DNA from: Diplonema japonicum
Taxonomy: Eukaryota; Protista; Euglenozoa: Diplonemea
Length of the DNA: 64,000 nucleotides
NCBI GenBank assembly: GCA_964019335.1
Contig: OZ025653.1
Location: 248,001 to 312,000 of the forward strand
Direction of reading: 5' to 3'
In this document: one piece after another, positions 21,973 through 34,058 of the stretch
Layout of the letters: each line of letters starts with the position of its first letter
How positions within the stretch are numbered: the stretch's first letter is position 1
Program-made: the position numbers and the translations under genes
The notes under the pieces: generated by a model
Database searches by the model: none
Told to the model about the DNA's origin: nothing
The model's input: only the letters and a program-made list of their open reading frames with translations

Positions 21973-24900
21973 TCATTTCTTTTGCATCATTTCGCACCTC
22001 ACGGTTGCCCCCGGATCATAGAGGCCTACCACCAGATAAAGAGGCACTTTTGCACCATCGAAATCAGATATTCTAGATATGGTGTGGGTTTGTTTCTTAA
22101 GTTTCCCAGAAACGGTCCCAACCGAGAAGCAGATCTCTTTGCTAGTGACCTGCGCCTTAACTATGCAATCGTCTGTCGGCCATTCGCTGTTCATATTGGA
22201 CTTGTTTTCTCCAACAAGAGTCCCGTGGTTACTGTAGACCATTGACCCTTTGGTTCTGAATATCGGGGTGTTAAGGTCCTTAGTGGCCTCGCTAGAGAAG
22301 CCCACGTAGCACCCGTTGGTCTTACCATTGAATGTAAGGGTTAATTCGTACTCATCGTCTGGCTGGATCAGAAGCCCTCTTGCGTTCTTGAATTGTTTCT
22401 GTCCGCCAGATGTCAGCGTGCCGTCGTCGGATTTCTCTAGACCCTCCCCTACGGTCCAGTCACGGAACAACACAGCTTCCTGTTCTTCGCTGTCCTTCTT
22501 GGAACTTACTTTTGATGTAAACGTTGCCTTGCACCCGTCGGTGTACAACCCCACCAAAGGGTGCACAACTGGAGGTAGGTTTCCGAATTTTTCTGGTATC
22601 TCCGTGCCATCGATAGCAAATGCTAGTGTTCTGCTGTCCATATCCAATGTGCAGGTTACAACTGGACTTCCTGAAAAGGACGGGTGTTCGAAGTTTTCAC
22701 TTCCGTGGGAGGCCTTTCCGTGGTTGCTTATGACCCACGTCGTTGGCTTTCTGTACAGCGTTGAGTTCAGAACACAGTCTTCCGTGCACACCCCAACGGT
22801 GGAACCATTTACACCACCGTCAATCGTGACGTTCCACACGTGCACCCCTTGTGAGATGGGGCCTCGCATGGCTGCTGCGTAAGAGTTTCTCGTCATTTTG
22901 AGGGTGTCACCCGACACGTCCATGTCTGGGGACTTTTTAATCCACCCCTTTTCCTCCTCTACCGTGTATGGCTTGCACTCTATGATACCGTGGCCATTGG
23001 ACACAAAAGGTACAATACCAGTAGGTGCGTCTATCGTTTCCACACGCAGCACCTTGCCGTTCACACCAAACATGACTTGGTTCTTGCCGATGTCCACGAA
23101 CACGCAGACAAGCATGTTTGAGGGAAGCTTGCGCCGCTCACCTTCGATGTCGTGCTGCAGGCCATCTTCGTCTGACACAATTTTCACCGGTGTGCACACC
23201 AAACCTTTCCCTCCTGCATGGATGAACCCTATTGTCGTCTCTCTTCTGTTTTTGGTATCCTCCGGAATCGGCGTGAATGACCACATGCGTTTCAAATCAG
23301 TATTGTGAGGTATCTTGTGCCCACTGCAATCGCCGATAACAATGTGCCGTCCGAGTTCGTCAAAGGGGTTCTTTGCAAAGCTTGGTATTGGAAAGCTTAC
23401 GTTTCTAAGCTGGCTAAAAGCCGGAGTAGAGATTTTCATGAACTCCAGTGTAATGAAGTATTTCCACCCTGACCACGGGCACTCGCTGCCTTCACTGAAC
23501 GTCCTTGAGTCTTGGACACTCATCACGCCCTTTTCTTTGGCCTCCTTGAGGCAGGACATCTTCCATTCCACATCCTGCGAAGACTTACTCAGTTGTGGGT
23601 TTCCGGTGAGCACGACATGTTGTGATTCAACACTTGAATCGCTGAAGGGTTTGCCCTTTTTGAGCAGACGCTCTTTGAACTCCTCCGGCTTCTCGTCTGT
23701 CTCGGAGACCTCTAATGAAAGGCGTATAAGGTAGCCGTTGCTCTTTGACAACCCATTCCTTAGTGCGTCTGCGTTAACCGACACCTGCTGGTAAGTGGTC
23801 TTCGCGTCTGCATCCAAGGGCCCACGTACCACCTCCACCCCCGAATCTTGATCCCATAGGCTGTTGTCATACACAAGATTCCTCCCACCTACGACAGTGA
23901 CTCCCGTTGTAGTTTCAATATCTTCCTCATCTGGAAGCAAGGTGACCTCGCCACCTTTATCTGTAAAGCAAACCATTAGCTGTGCCTCTTCCATTTCGTG
24001 GCTCAGTTCCTGTGTCTTGTTGCCCGCCTGCAACTTTACCTTTTTGGTGTCCATATTTAAGGTCACCACAACCAGACCCGATCCCACTTCGAAGAAAACA
24101 GCTGCGTCCTTCGTTAGCTTTGTAATGTCCACCACAAGGTGTACCTTGCTGCTTCCAATCCCAATCTCCATGCCCCCTGTCACATTGAGCTTCCATCTGA
24201 CCTGCCCTTTCGTCACGACTGTCTCTCCGAGCACCAAGCCACGGATGTTTGCAGGTACGTTGTGGGCGGCCAGCTTTGCTGAAAAGCCTTCGACCTTTAT
24301 GGGGATGTGGTGTCGACCCCAGAACACCTGCTCTTCCTCCACTTCCACCTTCCCAGCCTCCGTCATTGCAGGGGGTGCGTAGGGGCCTTGCATGAACCTT
24401 GCTAGCCCGTGTCCCAACAGCTCCGGTGCTGTCACAGACAGAGCCTTCGGCATTGCCATGTGGATGTAGGCATCAAGGCCCACTCCAATTGTCTCGATGC
24501 TGTTTGCATCACATATGTGCAGCGCGCCAGCAATGTCAGGGTCTGTGAGAGGGGTACCACCAGGGGTGACAACAAACATGTACTTTTTCTTCCCCTTCAT
24601 TTCATTCAGTAGCGACGCCGTTAGCTTCAAAGGGTCACCCAGGTCACCTGATGCGTCGCCAGTGCCCTTCAACCTCGCCATGGCACTGACGAATGCGTGC
24701 ACAGAGTAATTGTCCCACTCACCTGATGTGTGCACACATGTGGTCTCCGACCCGTGGTACAGGACGACGGTGGGGTCCAGATCGACAGCTGCGATACTGC
24801 TGCGAAGGTGAGCGAAGAGCCGTACGAAGGTCCCTACGCGTGAGTCGGAGATGCATGCAGCATCGAAGGCGATGGCAACGCTGTACGAGCGTCGCCCACC

Positions 24901-27900
24901 AGCGCTCCTGCGTGCAAACACTTTGTTGTAAGTGAAGTTCGTCGTCATGGCCTTGATCAAACCAGGGATGTGAAGCTCCACGCCGCTGCTGGCTGCCTCT
25001 GCTCTCGTGAACACGTTATGCGGAAGAAGTGAGGACAAGGCATCAAGGCTGGACTCCAGAGGTGCGTAGGAGAACACGTTGCAAAGCTCGTGAGTTGGAT
25101 CGATGACGTTCTTAATGGCACCTCGTAGGTCATCACACTGTGACTGTGCAGTGCTTAACAATCCATCTGCAAGCTTTGTGGCAACCATCTTGACTGGGGG
25201 CATGCCCTCTGATGTTGCTGCGATTTGCTCTTTCGGGTACTCCAGCTCCGCCACTATTTTGCTGACGGTTGAGGTGGGGATCTCAAAGTCGTGAATCACA
25301 GCAAGTTTTGCTTCTGTGTTCTTTGACCGTCTGTTGACCAACCGCCGCAGCCTGCTCACACCCTGGCTGGCATCGTGAAGGACGCGTTCCAAGAAGGGCC
25401 TCAAAGTTTGGTCATCCCAGCAAACCATCTCCGCTAGTGTCAAACCAATCTCCAGCGTCTTCGTCTTAGGGTTCATATTCAGGCTATCGACTTTAAGCAA
25501 GCAGAACGGCGGCAGCAGGACCTCTTCCTCTTCAGCGTAGGCGCTGATGAACTTCATTTCAAGCCCACGTTTAACTTCCTTTATCGTGAACGCTACCTTC
25601 TTCCCGTCACCAAAGCAGAACTCGTCCACACGCCTTCTGCTTGTGCTCGTGGCAGCGGGCCAGCCTTGCAGCTTGCCGGCCTCCCAAGACTTGAAGGCCT
25701 CCATGGTCGGCGTGTCGACGTTCAACCCGCGGTACACAGTCGTTGAGTCGATGTCTTCACACAACGTGAGGAGCAAGCAGATGAATTTAATCCACTGCTT
25801 GATGACCAACCTTGCCTCCAGCTTCACATTTTCATCTTTCGATATTGCCTGTCGCATCGCTTTGTTGATGATCGAGTACAACGTGGGGTTACGTGTATTC
25901 CCCACACGTGCCTTGTAGTCCCTGAAGGGCTTATTGTCTTCTTTCGTTCCCGCAGGGCTCCACTTTGGGACGTTTTCGTACCCCATAGCACTATCAATGT
26001 CAGGCCCCTCCATCGTGTAGAGTCTCATACACAGCATGTGTACGGGAGTCAAGTGCTCATAGCACTTCTTGTACAACATGCACTGATGGTCGACGAGATT
26101 AAACAGCGCTGCACTTTTCCGTGTGTTCTCCGGTGATTTCAGATTATCCAATAGCTCTTCGACCACGCCCTTGCCGGACTCGTTTGACCACATTTGCGAC
26201 AGCTCGTTTGCCAGGCTAAGCAGTTCTTTTTTGTCCCAGGCCTCGAAGTCTTCGTTCTGCGACCGTTCGATCATTTTTTCCTGCTTCAGGTTTGCGAGGC
26301 AGGCATCCTGCAGCTTCTTGATGTTACCAGGAATAGGGATCTTGTCGACACCCCCATTGATGCCTTGGCTTTCGTCCATATTCCCCGTGACTTTTGCGTC
26401 ATCATCAGCACTGTCGTCGTCGTACGAGTCATAGTCCATGTAGTCATAGCCCGTGTCCATCTCGTCTTCTTCTTTTACTGGAAGCGGCGGCGGCGGCGGT
26501 GTCGGTGGCTTCGGCGGTTCCTTGTCTCTCGCTGGTGTGCTGCTCTTACGCTTCGGTCTCCAGTTCAACACATAAGCCTCGGCCAATATCTCACGCAGGT
26601 TGTGTCTCAAAGCCGCCTCCGACTTCGGGAGCAGCTGGGAGTAGGTGCTGAGAAGATTTGAACACAGCAAGAACACCGAGCTGTGCGTCGTTGAGTACGA
26701 CGCGATGTCATCTTTCCACCTCTCCAAGCAGTGTTGCAGCACGCGCACGCACACATCAGAAGAGATCACCTGCGCCCGTTTGTGGAAGCACGAAAAAACG
26801 TATTGCCAGAAGCGGATGTCTGCGGAATCCGGATCCAAACAGCTGAACAGCACGTTAGGAAGGCCACTGTTGTCGACAAGGCTCCTAAAGGTACCAGATC
26901 CTGCTTCCACCTCTGTATCAGCCCCAAACGGCTTCACAGCCAACCTGACTACCCTGTTCAGGAAAGCGGTCGACAGCTTTGCTGCATGCTTGCGTGTCGG
27001 GTTTGCCGTAAAAAACATCCTGAAGTTCTTGTGGATCCCATTCTCCTTCGTGGCCTTCACTTCATCATCACCACGCTCTGTCAAAGTGAACGTCGCGTCA
27101 GCCTCCAGTAGGGAGTTCAGCCGCTCAATGGCTGCAGGTTGTGCCCAGTCTATGTTGTCCAACAGCACCCAGTCACCCTCTTGCATGGCATGTATGAGCT
27201 GCGACTCGGCAAAATGGAAGCTCGTTACCTCAATCTTTTTGTGTAGCTCCTCCAGCCTCTTAGCACTCGGCCCCCAGATCGTTCCCTGCAGAGCTGCACA
27301 CACCTCGAGTGTAGAAGTTACGAGCCTCGTTCTATACCCCTTACCCCTTGAGAGCATATCAAGATGCTTTAGCAGCACGTCTCGCAGCTGAGCTACCTTG
27401 TCCTCGTGGGCTTTCCTTTTTTCTTTCTCTTCTTCCCCTTCTTCGGCAGGAGATTCGGGTATCTTCGCGGAGATAAAAGCAGCTGCAATCCTACTCGCTT
27501 CGCAGCCCAGCGACTCATACAGGTCGTACGGTGTGCTTTCAGTGAGCCCGTTCCACGGCACCCACATCCCAAGGAGTTCACTTATCTCTGTGTTCGGTGT
27601 GATTGGAATGATGCGCAGCCTCTGCCCGCATATCCTTGCGAGCTCCCTAACAAGTGCTGTCTTTCCTGATGCCGTCGGGCCCTCCAGAAGTACCGCGAGA
27701 GAAGAACCCGATGCGGATGCTAGTGCAGACAGCCTGTGCCTGAGTTCCCCTGAAGGAGGGAGCGGTGCGCAGTTGCTCTCATGCGATGAGCGGAGCATTC
27801 CTGCTTGCCCAAACATCACGACACCTCCGTGTCCCAGGGCAACAATGCTGGGCGCAGGGTTCATGTGAGCCTTCATGCTCTTCGCCATGTTTGCCAGCAC

Positions 27901-30900
27901 CTCCGACACTGTCGCCCTATCTTGCGGGGAGGGATATCGCCACTTGTAGATCACCTCGATCACTTGCACGAAGAATTCTTTTATCTTGTCGATTTGGACC
28001 CCTTCAGGCTTCAACTTCAGTGCTGCGTTGCTGTTCTTCCCCAATCTCGCCTCCAGTAGCAGGATCACTTTCTCTAGTGTTCTTAGGTTCACGATGCTTG
28101 TGTATGTCTCCCTGTCCACCCCTAGCTTCCCTTGCTGCAATAAGTTCGTGACGCTACTGTGCACATATGCAAGCTGTTTAAAGAGCTCGTTCTCCAACTC
28201 CTGGTTCCCTTCGAGGTCCAGAGTCGAGCAGAACTTGTGCCGCGCGATGTGGAGCCCCTCACTGCATTCCAGGTCGTGCAGTGTCAGCACAGTGAAGAGA
28301 TCCTTCACCGAGGGCGGCAAGTGGGAGCGTCCACCCCCGACTTTTGCAGGGTTCACGGCAGCAAAAAATCGGATGTGTTTCAGGGTGCACTTCTCGCGGG
28401 TTCCTGGTATGATTCTCTCGTCGGCACCCTCCTCGAGCAGGGGGCTCAGGACTTGTTGCACTTCGGGCGGCGCTAAGTTTAGCTCGTCGAGAAGTATCCA
28501 GTATTCGAGGTTCTCCTTTGCCTTCCTTAATGCGGCCCCAAGCTGGCCCTCACGTCTCTTGAACACACGCACACCGCCCTCCATTGTAGGGATTGGAGCT
28601 CCAAACAAATGCGCTGTTGTCGTCCCCGCACTGAACTGCACACGCACAAACTCGCATCCTAATAGCTTTGCTGTGCTCTCGACGATAAAGCTCTTCCCGA
28701 TCCCAGGGACTCCCTCTAGCAGCATGGGTATACGCAGCGTGCTCGCTGCAAACACGCTTGAGAGGTTTTTCAGCATCGATGAGATGGGCACCATGGAAGT
28801 CCTCTGCAACCGCTTCGCTACATTTGCGGGGTCAAAGCATCTTGCGACACCCAGGACCTGCCCTGCATGAATCTCCAGTACGTTGTCACCTTCGCGCAGC
28901 TTAACGTAGTCACTCATTGTGCTGTGCTGTGGTAGGTCATCCGCGGGGAGCAACCTCAACGACCGCTCCGCCACCCCTGCATCCCATGCAAGTGGTTCGA
29001 GATCTCTGGGGCTTAGTACTAGTTGAAACAAATGCTTCGCACCGAGCACGAACGCACCGAACTCATCAATTCCTGCCAGCTGCGGGTATTGTGCTACGAA
29101 CTTAGCTAATCTCAGCATCTTTCTTAACGTTGTATTAGGTAGGACTTTCATTATGCTCTTTGCCAGAAGCTCTGCAGCTGCCAGCCCACCAAGCAGACTT
29201 TTAAGCACCTCTGTGTGGAATGTGCTAGTTGCAGTGACATACGTTGCGTGTCGTCCTCGCTGTAAGAGAAGCACCTAATCGCAGTAAAAGAGCGGAACAC
29301 AGAGGGAAGACTGTAAGCAACAGGGCATGTCGCTGTCAGAACTAATGGAACCTTCGTTTTCAGGGGGACACTGGCACCTGTGCTTTTGTGATGATGCATG
29401 TATGTATGTCATATACCTGGTGGCGCAAAAATGCCCAAGGGGAGCTCTCTGTTATGGAAGACGTCGCGCAGTGAGATGAACAACTGCGGGTCAGGCAGGT
29501 TCGCCGCCTTCAAAAGAATACCGCACCCCTGTTTTGCTGCGTCCGAAAGGGGGCCATCTTTCACGGCGAATACGGTCGAGCCTTTCTCCCCTTCCAGCTT
29601 GTTAGCAACGGCTTTTAATCGACACAGGGTTTCTGCCCAGCCGTCTAGCCCTCCCTCCTTCTTGCTGTTCCTCTCCGCCAGCAACGCCTCCTCGTCAGCT
29701 ACTGCTTTCACGTAGTCAGACTGCGAAAAGGGGTGGATGCTGCCCACCAAGTCGCCCTCCTCCGTAGAACACGTGAGGTGTATTGTCTCAATGTCCTTGC
29801 CGATGATGGCACAAAATACTTTCGCAGCTAGACTCTTACAGCTAGTGGGGCCAACCAGTAGAGCAGGCTCGTCGGCGGCGCACATATGTGCAATCAACAC
29901 GATGACGTCCTTTATCAGCTGCACAGAAGTCCCCGCCAAAGGGTGCCGCGACATCGCACCCTCGAACACACACCGCAGGCCCCCGGTGGTAAAACTCACT
30001 TTTCCATCCGCTTCGGTGATACTGCCGCCTTCGTTGGCAGCCAGTGACAGGGCACCAGATTCTTCGGTACTAAGAAGACCTAGCTCACTAAAGCTGCTGC
30101 ACAAACTTCCAAGAGTGCTTGATCTCTCCTTCTTCGACTTTGCTGAAGACAATAATGAGGCTGTGTAGCACAGGCACCACCGGAACTCAAAGGACGCATC
30201 TGCCCGTGTCGCCTCCAGCCTGTCCATCCGGTGTAGCACTTTCTTCAAATATCTCACGTTCATAGGCAAGCCACGTTCAGGGAAGAGAACTATTGCGTCG
30301 GCCACCTTCTCGCGGCTGCTGCCACCCAGGAGAGCGAGGTAATCTGCCTTTTTCGGCATCGGTAGTGTTATCTTGACGAACTTAGAAGCAAACTTACTCG
30401 CCATCTTCTCAGCCTCACTCGAGGCACACTCACCTACTATGCAAAAACCAGAAGCGGCGGGCAGGGGTGTGTCTTCTCCTGGTCTGGACAGCATCCCTGT
30501 GTCAATGAGTGCCATGAGCTGTGACTGCACTGCCCCGGGAAGCAGATCCAAGCCCGCAATTGTGAAAATCTTTCCCTCTTTAAGCGCACGGAGCAAGGGG
30601 CCATCTACTTCATTGATGGAAATCTGAGCCTTCTCTGAGCTCCTGGGCAGGATAGTACCCAGCCATTCACTCAGTGAAGAGCGCGGGGTTGCTATCACTG
30701 TCTCGATTTCACGCAGAAGCAGTTCGCTGATGTTCCAGTGGTAGTCATCAATGACGACAACAGGGATGCCCTGGTGAAGGCACCACGTGATGCGTTGCGA
30801 GACAGGGCCTAGAGAGGGCGCCGAAGACTCCAGCTTCCCTGAGACGTCGAGAATAGCTCGCATGGACGGGGAGCCCCGAGACCTGATGGCAGCCACGTAG

Positions 30901-33900
30901 TCTCCAGTAGGACTCCCGCCGAACCAAGAAGTCATTTCGATGAACAGAGACAGGGCCTTCCGGAAGTGCGACAAGTCACAGACCGAGTTCGAAGACACTG
31001 CAAACCGTCGTGCACACTGCATGGCACGCACAACGCTGTACACGCCGTGGGCACCACCAGCCATGCTGGAGCACATCCGTGCCGCCGCACTGACGTCGTC
31101 CTTTTTCGTGGACGGCTGATTCAGGGAAAGCACTACTGAGGACCCTTTCGAGTACAGGCCCACGAATGGTACGAGCGGCCGCTCCTTGTTGATGGCACCC
31201 TTGATGCCAAGGGAGCCCTGCTGCACTCCATTCTTGAAAAACTGGACCACCTCTTGACTGCAGTGTACCTTCACTGTAATCTTATCCCCTTGGCTGTACG
31301 GCTCTCCTATCACGCCTTTGTTCTCGCCGTCTTCCCCGTGTGCCACTTTACCGTTGCTGCAATACACCCACACGAATTCGCACTTTTCCACTTCCCTGTC
31401 CATGTCCAGTGCTTCATTGTCTAGAGCAACGCCTATAGTTGTATTGTCAATGGGACAGTCCCCCACTATTACGTCCCACTCGTGCGACGCCGTCAGGGGC
31501 ATATCCACTATCGCATTGGAGTACTTATCCTTCGACCGCGTGACGCGAACCCTTCCACTGGGGTATGTGTATGCAGAGGTGCCTTTCCTGCTCCAGTGAG
31601 TGTCATTGGGGGCAAACAGGAGGTTACTGCATAGCAGTCGAAGTTCTTCTTCCAACACCTCCTTTTCCACTTTGTCGAGGGTCAGGATCGTGAAGCGGTT
31701 CGCAAAAGCGGGTGATAACGAGCCAAGCTGCGTGAAGTCGGCTGAGGCGAGCACTCTAAACCCTTCCTTAATTGTGATTTCCTGTTCCAGGTTCGGGCCC
31801 CTTTCCGCAACATAAAGTTCGGGCTGTTCTTCCAGCACCGAGTTCAGCCGTTCGAGCACGGTAGCTGAAGCTGATGGCAAATCGTCGAGCACGAGCCACT
31901 TTCCGGAAAGTGCTGCAGAAGTAACTGGGCCATCTACCCACTTTGAGACTGACCCCCCTTTGCCTTTCGCATCAGGTACCTGCTGCCCGAGGAGGTTCCC
32001 GACAACTGTCTCATTGTTCACGTTGCACAAGTAGTGGCTGCGTGTTCGCAAGGCGGCATAGCTGAGCAGGAGAGACGACGTTCCAATCCCCGATTTACCC
32101 ACCAGCAGCACGGGTCTGCCTAGGTCCATCACAAAGTCAAGCTGCCTGTAAACCCCGAGGAACCTGTCCGTCACGACAATTGGATGCTTCGGAGTGCTTG
32201 CATTCTCGTCCTGGTGAGACCACACACGGTCCCCAACATTAGGAAGATTTCCTCCTGACTTCCCCAGGCACTGCGCAATTGCTAACGGGACGTCCACAAC
32301 TGCTGGAGCTTTTGTCGTTTTGGCTGATTTCACCTGTTCAATAATCTTACTCACGTGGGACCTGCCCTTTCTCGTGTGGAACCTCACACCGTACGTACAC
32401 CATGCCGTCGCTACGTACCTACTCAGCACTGAAAGGGTCTTTGCCTCCACATCAGCGTGCTCCTCATTCACCCCTGCTGTCATTAGCTTCACGGAGTTGA
32501 TAATGTCACGGATGCTAAAAACTGTAAGCGGTGTCGCGATGGACGTCTTCTTATGACTGTTAACGAAATGCACCACCTTTAAATGTGTACCCACTATAAG
32601 CTTTCCAATGTCGATCCATGATGCGGGTATGTCCCCTAACACCTCCGCTAGCTTTGAACATGCGATCTCCACCAGCTCATCGTCAGGGAGCTCCAGAAGC
32701 TTGACAGGGTGGAACCTTGACAGGAATGCAGCTGACAAGCTCTGTCGTTTTCCTTTGAAGAGCCCGCTGCAGGGGTTCTGTGTGATTATGAGGCGGAAGC
32801 CTGGGTGGCGACGTACTTCTCGAGCTGCACGCGCGGGGTTCGAAGGGTCAGGGAGCATCAAGAGTCCAGTGTCGAGTGCGGTTTCCAGGGTAGCAAGCAC
32901 TTCTTCCTGCGCCAAGTTGCACTCATCTAGCACGAGTAACGCGCCGTCTGTGAAGGCATCCGTGAACGGCGCATGTGAAAGCTCCAGCTTCCCCTTCGTG
33001 AGCTGCATCCTCCCGACGAGATCTTCGACAGTTGTGCTCGACGACAAGTTGAAGCGGATTGATCTCCTCCCCGAGCGTTTAGCCGCAGCTGCCACGCTTG
33101 CTGTTTTCCCGACCCCCGTGTCCCCCTCAATCAGCAGCGGCACATGCGACTGCAGCGCCTTACACAGAGTACCCACGTTCTGTGAAGTCGTCCGCGTGAA
33201 CACCATCCCTTTGGAGCTTTCTGTCTGCGGGATAATCTCCGATACACGCTTACCTCCGCTCACATCTGATGTTGATGTAGCTATCCTAAAGTCAGTTGTG
33301 TTTTCCTGAAGCTTTATGCGCATCGCTTGCACGTCATTTTTAAACACTAGTTCGGGGTGAAAGTTCGCACGTTTGCTAGCGGCTCCGTATGGTTGGTATT
33401 TGGATTCCCCCTGCGAGGGCGGGGCGTCGTCTGGCGGCAGGCCTATGGCAGCCCTAAAAAGTGGTATCCATGTTCCAGGGTCCGACGCAGACATTCGCAA
33501 GAATTTTCGAGCCTCACTAAAGAACGCCATGCGTACCTCGTTCGGGAAGTCAGATAGGAGCGGGGGAATCCGTGAAACAAGGTGTGGCTTGTCTGTTGCC
33601 CATGAAACGATCTCGGCGGCCATACGCACGCCATGCGGGCGATGCAGCACCGCCAACAGCACATCGGAGATATCTGTCTCCTGGATGAGTCCTCCGGGAA
33701 CAGGGAAACCGCATTCAATGGCCTCCTCAAGTGCTGCGACATAGTAAGGGGCGGTAGGTTTTACGGACCCCAGGGGGAGGGGATAGGACGGGAAACGATG
33801 AAGTTCACCGAGACGCACAATAGCTTGGTGGTTCTCTTTTTCAAGAGCTTCCACTTCTCGTTCGCTTTTCTGATCTTTTTTCTTGATCGCCTCCTGTTGC

Positions 33901-34058
33901 ACCAACCCAACTCTTCCTTTGTAGATCACTTTCACGTACGTCTCTTGGCCCAGCACTGTCAGCGGAGCGTCTCCTTCACATTCCTCGCAGCCCAGTTCCC
34001 CCCAGAATGTCACATCGCTTTCCAACTTTTCAGCCCGATAGGCATGCTTACTCGACAT
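21973..34058 (-). CDS. Giant (~4004 aa) midasin-like 6xAAA+ / SPRY / ADP-ribosyltransferase / VWA / multi-SPRY protein
   Basis: Exons 34058-29417, 29377-29243 and 29210-21973 sum to 12015 nt in frame via 39- and 32-nt GT-AG introns. Walker motifs GDTGVGKT/LDECN, GVPGIGKS/LDELN, GPTASGKT/LDN; ART motifs VYRG, TSTS, EEEEVLLPP; midasin-like pre-VWA segment; SPRY strands. Confidence 0.88.

Follow-up and report, generated by a model that had tools for sequence, protein, structure and literature searches.

Midasin is usually regarded as a single, essential and highly conserved ribosome-assembly motor, and the locus analyzed here raises the question of what a second, remodelled midasin-like giant may do in the same cell. 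The locus lies on the minus strand of a 64-kb window of Diplonema japonicum DNA (the whole stretch that was analyzed, C6:248001-312000 of an assembly of 62.5 Mb in 132 contigs). It consists of two long open reading frames (ORFs), ORF1 (29409-34058, 1549 amino acids [aa]) and ORF2 (21973-29274, 2433 aa), which are in different frames with 134 nucleotides (nt) between them. An earlier note, made from the sequence alone, had read the two ORFs and a 135-nt exon as a single protein of ~4004 aa, in which a midasin-derived ring, an ADP-ribosyltransferase (ART) and SPRY domains would form an immune sensor-effector. The locus is one spliced gene, and it is expressed. Its product of 4004 residues is a midasin paralogue that probably works as a tethered-head AAA+ machine, the head being composed of an R-S-ExE ART, a VWA domain and SPRY domains.

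The gene is organized as follows.

29417..34058, minus strand: exon 1, 4642 nt, encoding the N-terminal region, AAA1, AAA2, the ring SPRY, AAA3 and the first half of AAA4.
29378..29416, minus strand: intron 1, 39 nt, GT..AG, including the in-frame TGA that terminates ORF1.
29243..29377, minus strand: exon 2, 135 nt, encoding the mid-part of the degenerate AAA4.
29211..29242, minus strand: intron 2, 32 nt, GT..AG.
29210..21976, minus strand: exon 3, 7235 nt, encoding the end of AAA4, AAA5, AAA6, the tether, ART, VWA and the SPRY array, followed by the TGA stop at 21973-21975.

Joining the three exons affords a frame of 12,012 nt (4642 + 135 + 7235), or 4004 codons, as the earlier note had proposed. 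When read beyond the TGA, the frame of ORF1 encodes a peptide resembling the terminal part of an AAA_5 module, and this peptide extends to a GTATGT donor at 29242. Public runs were aligned to window positions 28600-30100, and run X7 provided one 499-nt contig containing both joints. This contig skips exactly the two introns, with gaps of 32 nt at 29210/29243 and of 39 nt at 29375/29415 that read CT..AC on the plus strand and GT..AG on the gene strand. Over the same interval, runs X3 and X4 provided DNA contigs with the unspliced form at high depth. Searches were made exon by exon, and the position in the spliced protein is obtained arithmetically by adding 1571 to the ORF2 number. The peptide encoded by exon 2 (44 internal codons) aligned precisely between the ORF1 and ORF2 matches of homologues (family representatives P0005, residues 1595-1609; P0003, 1503-1518; P0008, 3082-3114). 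Exon 1 was colinear with residues 7-1589 of P0002, a homologue displaying the same architecture in a single ORF from one Trinity transcript.

The in-frame TGA and the change of frame between the ORFs in the genomic sequence would be compatible with two separate genes, or with a gene disrupted by a stop codon together with a frameshift. This explanation is extremely improbable, since a single contig removes exactly 39 and 32 nt between GT..AG borders and restores one frame, and since the junction falls within an AAA module across which homologues are colinear as single ORFs. The sizes of the micro-introns are also ordinary for the lineage, because median intron lengths of 37 to 42 nt have been reported for several diplonemid species (PMC12621601). 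Both introns display an A/C-rich tract before a CAG acceptor, and they are 135 nt apart within one AAA module. A single intron of 157 to 161 nt was considered and rejected, because the donor at 29416 and the strong acceptor at 29260 differ in phase. Three further runs labelled as the same organism (X6, X8 and X9) contained 55 to 88% of the 31-mers of window positions 27000-31500, indicating that strain-level variants of the gene exist.

The AAA+ ring is encoded by the following segments.

32712..33140, minus strand: AAA1 (ORF1 307-449), AAA_5 at 77 bits, Walker A GDTGVGKT and Walker B LVLDE, intact.
31692..32114, minus strand: AAA2 (ORF1 649-789), AAA_5 at 52 bits, GKSGIGTS (Walker A Lys lost) and Walker B LVLDD, degenerate.
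30414..30791, minus strand: AAA3 (ORF1 ~1090-1215), partial AAA_5 at 34.6 bits over 1147-1215, no P-loop and a degenerate Walker B.
29417..29876, minus strand: first part of AAA4 (ORF1 ~1395-1547), AAA_5 at 18.6 bits, atypical GPTSCKS and no Walker B (ILLKAANLP).
28294..28725, minus strand: AAA5 (ORF2 184-327), AAA_5 at 62 bits, GVPGIGKS and ILLDE, intact.
26953..27693, minus strand: AAA6 (ORF2 528-774), AAA_5 at 68 bits, intact Walker A GPTASGKT and LLDN (catalytic Glu replaced).

Six AAA_5 modules are therefore present in one chain, five of them above the Pfam cut-off and the sixth degenerate with conserved motifs. AAA4 runs from exon 1 through exon 2 into exon 3, both introns being inside this module, and its exon 2 segment (VLTATCP...FRSF) aligned to VLTVTCP or LVLTIT in P0005, P0003 and P0002. 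Full Walker A and B motifs are found in AAA1 and AAA5 only. This pattern is identical in homologues of 30 to 45% identity, with the exception of the Lys residue of AAA2, which is retained in the other paralogue clade. Judged by these motifs, AAA1 and AAA5 look competent for hydrolysis, AAA6 for binding only, and AAA2 to AAA4 look structural.

Comparison with solved structures (PDB) returned midasins as the best matches, at 3e-77 for ORF1 and 6e-84 for ORF2, followed by NorQ/CbbQ at ~1e-11. Within the genome, the two halves of the ring matched a paralogue on C16 and then a midasin on C20 (1e-15 to 1e-18); loci on C36 and C77 matched at ~2e-4 only, and no further locus matched at E ≤ 0.001. A midasin-related origin of the ring is supported by these comparisons. 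The C36 and C77 loci (frames of 1840 and 1870 codons with strong AAA_5 matches) were considered as evidence of a VWA8-like origin, which was rejected in favor of midasin on the grounds of these low scores. The midasin lids AAA_lid_7 and AAA_lid_5 were below the Pfam cut-off in the gene (16 bits versus 22.7), and AAA_lid was above its cut-off in the orthologue P0002 (31.9 bits). BLAST matches between the ring modules and those of midasin were not colinear, and no module-by-module orthology was assigned. The locus on C20 encodes a separate, canonical midasin, the presence of which the earlier note had proposed to verify. This open frame of 4329 codons contains seven AAA_5 stretches (421 bits), AAA_lid_7 three times (143.7 bits) and AAA_lid_5 (80.7 bits), and its C-terminal part matches the Mdn1/Rea1 linker (3e-22), which has thus been kept.

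Other AAA_5 proteins were encountered in these searches. In the genome, a frame of 3616 codons (C22:225807-227525) matches AAA_5 strongly and AAA_lid_7 weakly (32 bits), and did not match the ring at E ≤ 0.001. Elsewhere, P0044 (Bryopsis sp., GMH42204.1, 6477 aa), P0126 and P0138 are giant proteins that carry two or three AAA_5 modules close to the N-terminus and, close to the C-terminus, a MIDAS-type VWA with an intact DxSxS. In these proteins, the AAA region matches AAA5-6 of the gene with 33% identity over 441 aa (4e-46), closer than the midasin of the same genome as the gene, and these proteins may represent an unstudied AAA_5-VWA family.

Downstream from the ring, three segments define the tether and the first two domains of the head.

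26350..26562, minus strand: presumed tether (ORF2 ~905-975), Pro-rich at first and then rich in Asp, Glu and Tyr, read from the translation.
25315..26157, minus strand: ART domain (ORF2 1040-1320; Pfam core 1128-1268), with R1182, S1210, E1249 and E1251 in ORF2 numbering.
24343..25035, minus strand: VWA domain of the midasin MIDAS type (ORF2 1414-1644), the metal-site residues DxSxS and TDG being lost.

The stretch between AAA6 and ART, including the tether, comprises ~250 residues and matched no Pfam family, in agreement with the proposed loss of the long midasin linker. The ART domain put forward at the outset was likewise recovered, with a confident fold and an intact R-S-ExE set. Searching the PDB with the single ART sequence led to HopU1 and SpvB, and a profile of ten family sequences matched Vis (6.7e-14), HopU1 (4.1e-12) and iota Ia/CdtA (3e-5). 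The AlphaFold model of the domain had a predicted local distance difference test (pLDDT) score of 86.2, and Foldseek aligned this model to Vis, C3 exoenzymes and HopU1 at ~1e-10. The E-x-E motif is the hallmark of arginine-directed R-S-E ADP-ribosyltransferases. None of the ten family members, drawn from both clades and of 32 to 42% identity, departs from R1182, S1210 (in T-S-T-S), E1249 or E1251, indicating that catalysis by the ART has been under selection. The domain looks catalytically competent, as predicted from these residues.

An alternative is that the ART is a pseudo-enzyme or a binder of NAD+ or ADP-ribose, and that the protein is a plain remodelling ATPase, such as a ribosome or ribonucleoprotein assembly factor duplicated from midasin. 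The ring and the VWA are indeed midasin-like, AAA2 to AAA4 of the same protein are degenerate, as are domains in many AAA+ giants, and the Pfam ART/ADPrib_exo_Tox score of this copy is just under the cut-off (21.6 versus 22.3 bits). The same Pfam model passes in the C16 paralogue (29.8 bits) and in P0002 (26.0 bits). The invariance of R, S-x-S and E-x-E in the ten family members and the match of a confident fold model to active toxins argue against a pseudo-enzyme, which we regard as quite unlikely.

The VWA domain was identified by profile. No Pfam match was obtained with ORF2 1380-1660, and the exhaustive search of representatives aligned ORF2 1414-1644 to many proteins with a Pfam VWA. The best PDB matches of the VWA profile were the MIDAS domains of Mdn1 (1.6e-15), Rea1 (3e-14) and Chaetomium thermophilum Rea1 (9e-12), and the match takes in the N-terminal element of the MIDAS domain that precedes the first strand. 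In the alignment, VWA relatives outside the ART-bearing family retain D-x-S-x-S-M, T/N-D-A and T-D-G. The serines of DxSxS are replaced in all ten ART-bearing members (FDAACIS in the studied protein), and the Asp of T-D-G is lost here (VTPG) and in most members, being kept in P0005 and P0006. The VWA of the earlier note is thus a genuine domain of the MIDAS type, with the correction that its metal site is gone throughout the family. Judging from these replacements, any ligand of this VWA is probably bound in another way than by the metal-ion mechanism of Rea1.

The SPRY domains and the remaining regions were delineated as follows.

31125..31595, minus strand: ring SPRY between AAA2 and AAA3 (ORF1 822-978), Pfam SPRY at 31.1 bits (859-978), family hidden Markov model (HMM) at 143 bits.
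23950..24321, minus strand: SPRY-like beta domain after the VWA (ORF2 1652-1775), hhalign 79%, E 1.7e-5 over 121 columns, moderate.
23275..23949, minus strand: ORF2 1776-2000, pLDDT <50, mostly coil, poorly conserved in homologues.
22975..23277, minus strand: possible degenerate SPRY (ORF2 ~2000-2100), Pfam SPRY at 13.6 bits, E 0.074, weak.
22516..22944, minus strand: SPRY (ORF2 2111-2253), Pfam SPRY at 53.7 bits, pLDDT 80-90.
22000..22458, minus strand: C-terminal SPRY (ORF2 2273-2425), family SPRY HMM at 111.6 bits, pLDDT ~60-67, all-beta.
33219..34058, minus strand: N-terminal region (ORF1 1-280), no Pfam match, Atlas lead to bacterial SH3 clusters with a score of 0.80, no better than chance.

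The tally is three solid SPRY domains, one SPRY-like domain and one weak candidate. Foldseek placed the model of ORF2 2111-2253 with the SPRY domains of TRIM67, TRIM9, SPSB2 and the ryanodine receptor, and BLAST matched ORF2 2273-2425 to a SPRY of P0002; these were the only two domains modelled when AlphaFold 2 was applied to the C-terminal 779 residues. The SPRY-like domain after the VWA had an Atlas lead to SPRY/Neuralized and low AlphaFold 2 confidence. Within the weak candidate, ORF2 ~2050-2095 contains the C-terminal SPRY motif only (hhalign E 0.004 to 0.005 over 39 to 40 columns), with low-confidence beta strands. The domain order initially proposed was thus confirmed for the AAA ring, the ring SPRY, the tether, the ART, the VWA and the last two SPRY domains. 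The third SPRY of the proposed triple terminus was reduced to a partial and weak motif, the SPRY-like domain after the VWA received moderate support, the SH3-like N-terminus had no more than a chance-level lead, and the FBA-like domain was not supported, ORF2 1776-2000 being a region with no Pfam or hhalign match. SPRY domains are common in other giant proteins of this genome, with two or three of them in frames of 3931 to 5912 codons (C6:123831-128966, C75:316658-317701, C18:107445-108302 and C60:422958-425057).

An exhaustive search with the ART and VWA region as query returned eight representatives with both domains (P0001 to P0008; 34 to 42% identity over the two domains), in which the match is one colinear stretch except for P0008. 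The relatives belong to Flectonema neradi (4121 and 3715 aa), Lacrimia lanifica, Diplonema ambulator and Diplonema papillatum (5652 aa, annotated as 'Midasin' in NCBI), and include three ENA proteins (P0001, P0003 and P0006). The D. papillatum orthologue has the accession KAJ9451414.1. All named members are diplonemids (Euglenozoa), and P0002, P0003, P0005 and P0006 are full-length and colinear across the whole protein. In the genome containing the studied gene, the paralogue at C16:603248-613249 is a frame of 3334 codons with a ring, an ART and a VWA; no SPRY was detected in the part characterized, its last ~200 residues lying outside. A tree of AAA5-6 separated two well-supported clades, one containing the studied gene, P0001, P0002, P0003, P0005 and P0006, and the other containing the C16 paralogue and the D. 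ambulator and D. papillatum proteins. Each clade has a copy from this genome in addition to copies from other diplonemids, and the duplication is therefore an ancient one. The ring SPRY is present in P0002, P0005 and P0006 and missing in P0003; the C-terminal SPRY domains are missing in P0005 and P0006 and range from 0 to 2 among orthologues, and no SPRY was detected in the second clade. Full-text literature searches returned no account in which an ART is fused to a midasin-like AAA+ ring, whether SPRY domains are present or absent. The architecture thus appears undescribed, as the earlier note had stated, although the protein is not unique, since it belongs to a family with two old clades. 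The sequences of this family are already public, unannotated or labelled 'Midasin'.

The surroundings of the gene are ordinary. Nearly all ORFs of more than 250 aa in the window are on the minus strand, with AT-richer spacers between them. This is the unidirectional clustering of genes typical of euglenozoans, and such clusters have been described in D. papillatum (PMC10161547). The neighbors are housekeeping genes encoding a cytosolic carboxypeptidase, a DEAD-box helicase, an aminotransferase and Utp14; the best relatives of the helicase are found among EukProt transcriptome proteins (69 and 63% identity), in Hemistasia (56%) and in Diplonema papillatum (52%).

The ART domain is itself widespread in this genome, where it was detected at 27 or more other loci. 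At three of those inspected (C34:347600-357500, C98:15200-25100 and C19:534500-544400), it is fused to arrays of BspA-type leucine-rich repeats (two loci) or to a five-fold PDZ array; of the other inspected loci, one had an ART match alone and two had no Pfam match. In other diplonemids, the partners of the ART include CAP, EF-hand and laminin-G-like domains. The genome also contains six ADP-ribosylglycohydrolase (PF03747) genes.

C11:202927-203760: ADP-ribosylglycohydrolase gene.
C13:283787-284749: ADP-ribosylglycohydrolase gene.
C29:328256-329347: ADP-ribosylglycohydrolase gene.
C1:276794-277750: ADP-ribosylglycohydrolase gene.
C30:47810-48778: ADP-ribosylglycohydrolase gene.
C20:369539-370633: ADP-ribosylglycohydrolase gene.

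These enzymes are possible erasers for the large ART family. The presence of at least 27 other ART loci together with the six glycohydrolase genes suggests that arginine ADP-ribosylation is widely used in this lineage.

How might such a protein work? The tethered-head reading draws on the analogy with midasin, since the ring, the acidic tether and the MIDAS-type VWA occur in the order found in that protein. In this model, the short Pro-rich and acidic tether would replace the long linker and join the ring to a C-terminal head made of an arginine-type (R-S-ExE) mono-ADP-ribosyltransferase, a metal-less VWA of the MIDAS type and SPRY domains, a further SPRY being located in the ring. The surfaces of the SPRY and VWA domains would capture a protein substrate. 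ATP turnover by the ring, driven by AAA1 and AAA5 with AAA6 acting as a nucleotide sensor, would move, gate or position the head and its ART, in a manner comparable to the MIDAS of Rea1. The ART would then ADP-ribosylate an arginine of the captured protein or of the machine itself. That the head docks on the ring, that the ATPase is coupled to the ART and that a substrate exists are each postulated. The more specific proposal of an ATP-gated, target-directed machine, in which the SPRY and VWA domains of the head would select a self or foreign protein and the ring would license its arginine ADP-ribosylation, appears doubtful as a whole.

Several observations weigh against the tethered-head reading or the data on which it is built. 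The nature of run X7 as RNA was deduced from the spliced form and from its short, low-depth contigs. The Pfam score of the ART in this copy is, as stated above, below the cut-off. About 450 residues of the C-terminal region (ORF2 1655-2110) gave no usable AlphaFold 2 model. Finally, the VWA lacks the ligand-binding residues of Rea1, and the analogy with midasin may fail for substrate capture.

With respect to the physiological role, we lean toward a conserved cellular remodelling or regulatory function over an immune sensor-effector. In the latter, the SPRY domains would recognize proteins of a virus, an intracellular bacterium or prey, the ring would be activated, and the ART would mark or poison the invader or the infected cell. 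Conflict systems often employ SPRY and R-S-E ART domains, the number of SPRY domains varies among orthologues (0 to 2 at the C-terminus, with no ring SPRY in P0003), and the same ART domain is fused elsewhere in the genome to BspA-type leucine-rich repeat and PDZ arrays. In addition, MoxR-vWA pairs serve bacterial conflict systems (PMC7159879). The search for paralogues with a swapped effector, as envisaged in the earlier note, pointed in the opposite direction: the genome contains two copies only, both with an ART. The two clades also predate the split from the sampled Diplonema and Flectonema, the active and degenerate nucleotide sites are kept family-wide, and the neighbors are housekeeping genes in a unidirectional cluster. 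A conserved cellular machine offers a better fit because there are two copies, no effector swap, and catalytic and degenerate sites kept across deep divergence, and we consider an immune function to be unlikely.

Diplonemids are among the most abundant marine heterotrophic protists. In these organisms, a midasin paralogue has shed its linker and its metal site and gained SPRY domains and a toxin-type ART, which is apparently active as judged from its conserved residues, and this arrangement has been retained in two lineages across diplonemids. The family thus offers a natural test of the rewiring of a midasin-type ring to another output. We know of no described case of an AAA+ ring controlling a mono-ADP-ribosyltransferase, and a single chain in which an AAA+ motor is coupled to protein ADP-ribosylation would be unusual. 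If this coupling is real and the targets are viral or bacterial, marine protists would possess, in this family, a novel form of cell-autonomous immunity.

The closest known system is midasin (Rea1/MDN1). In this protein, the head formed by the MIDAS domain docks back onto the ring, and ATP turnover serves to pull bound factors away from pre-ribosomes. The studied protein shares with midasin six tandem AAA_5 modules in one chain, midasin being the best solved match for both halves of the ring, and an acidic stretch ahead of a C-terminal VWA that matches the Mdn1/Rea1 MIDAS at 1e-15 to 1e-14. Unlike midasin, it lacks the linker of about 1700 to 2000 residues, has an ART between the acidic stretch and the VWA, carries SPRY domains in the ring and at the C-terminus, has lost the metal site and retains two modules with full Walker motifs. 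RNF213 (mysterin) is a giant protein with a partly degenerate, six-module, dynein-like AAA ring and an enzymatic effector in the same chain. By description rather than by sequence, the two proteins are alike in combining a partly degenerate six-module ring with an effector enzyme, whereas the effector is an E3 ubiquitin ligase in RNF213 and a mono-ADP-ribosyltransferase here; Pfam scans detected no RING or E3 match in the studied protein.

The ART domain has the fold and the R, S-x-S and E-x-E set of the R-S-E toxins and effectors (Vis, HopU1, C3 and iota Ia/CdtA), including the ExE motif of the arginine-modifying members. Unlike these secreted proteins, it is internal to an intracellular eukaryotic giant and is one member of a family of at least 27 loci. 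In bacteria, the MoxR-vWA ternary conflict systems couple AAA+ proteins of the MoxR/dynein-midasin clade to vWA domains and effectors, and the metal-binding aspartates are likewise absent from some of these vWA domains (Kaur et al. 2020, PMC7159879). Those systems are multi-gene, prokaryotic and based on single-module ATPases that hexamerize, whereas six modules are fused here in one eukaryotic chain. Finally, the confident C-terminal SPRY has the fold of the SPRY/B30.2 domains of TRIM9/67, SPSB2 and the ryanodine receptor, but the studied protein, unlike the TRIM and SPSB proteins, pairs SPRY with an AAA+ ring and an ART rather than with a RING, a B-box or a SOCS box.

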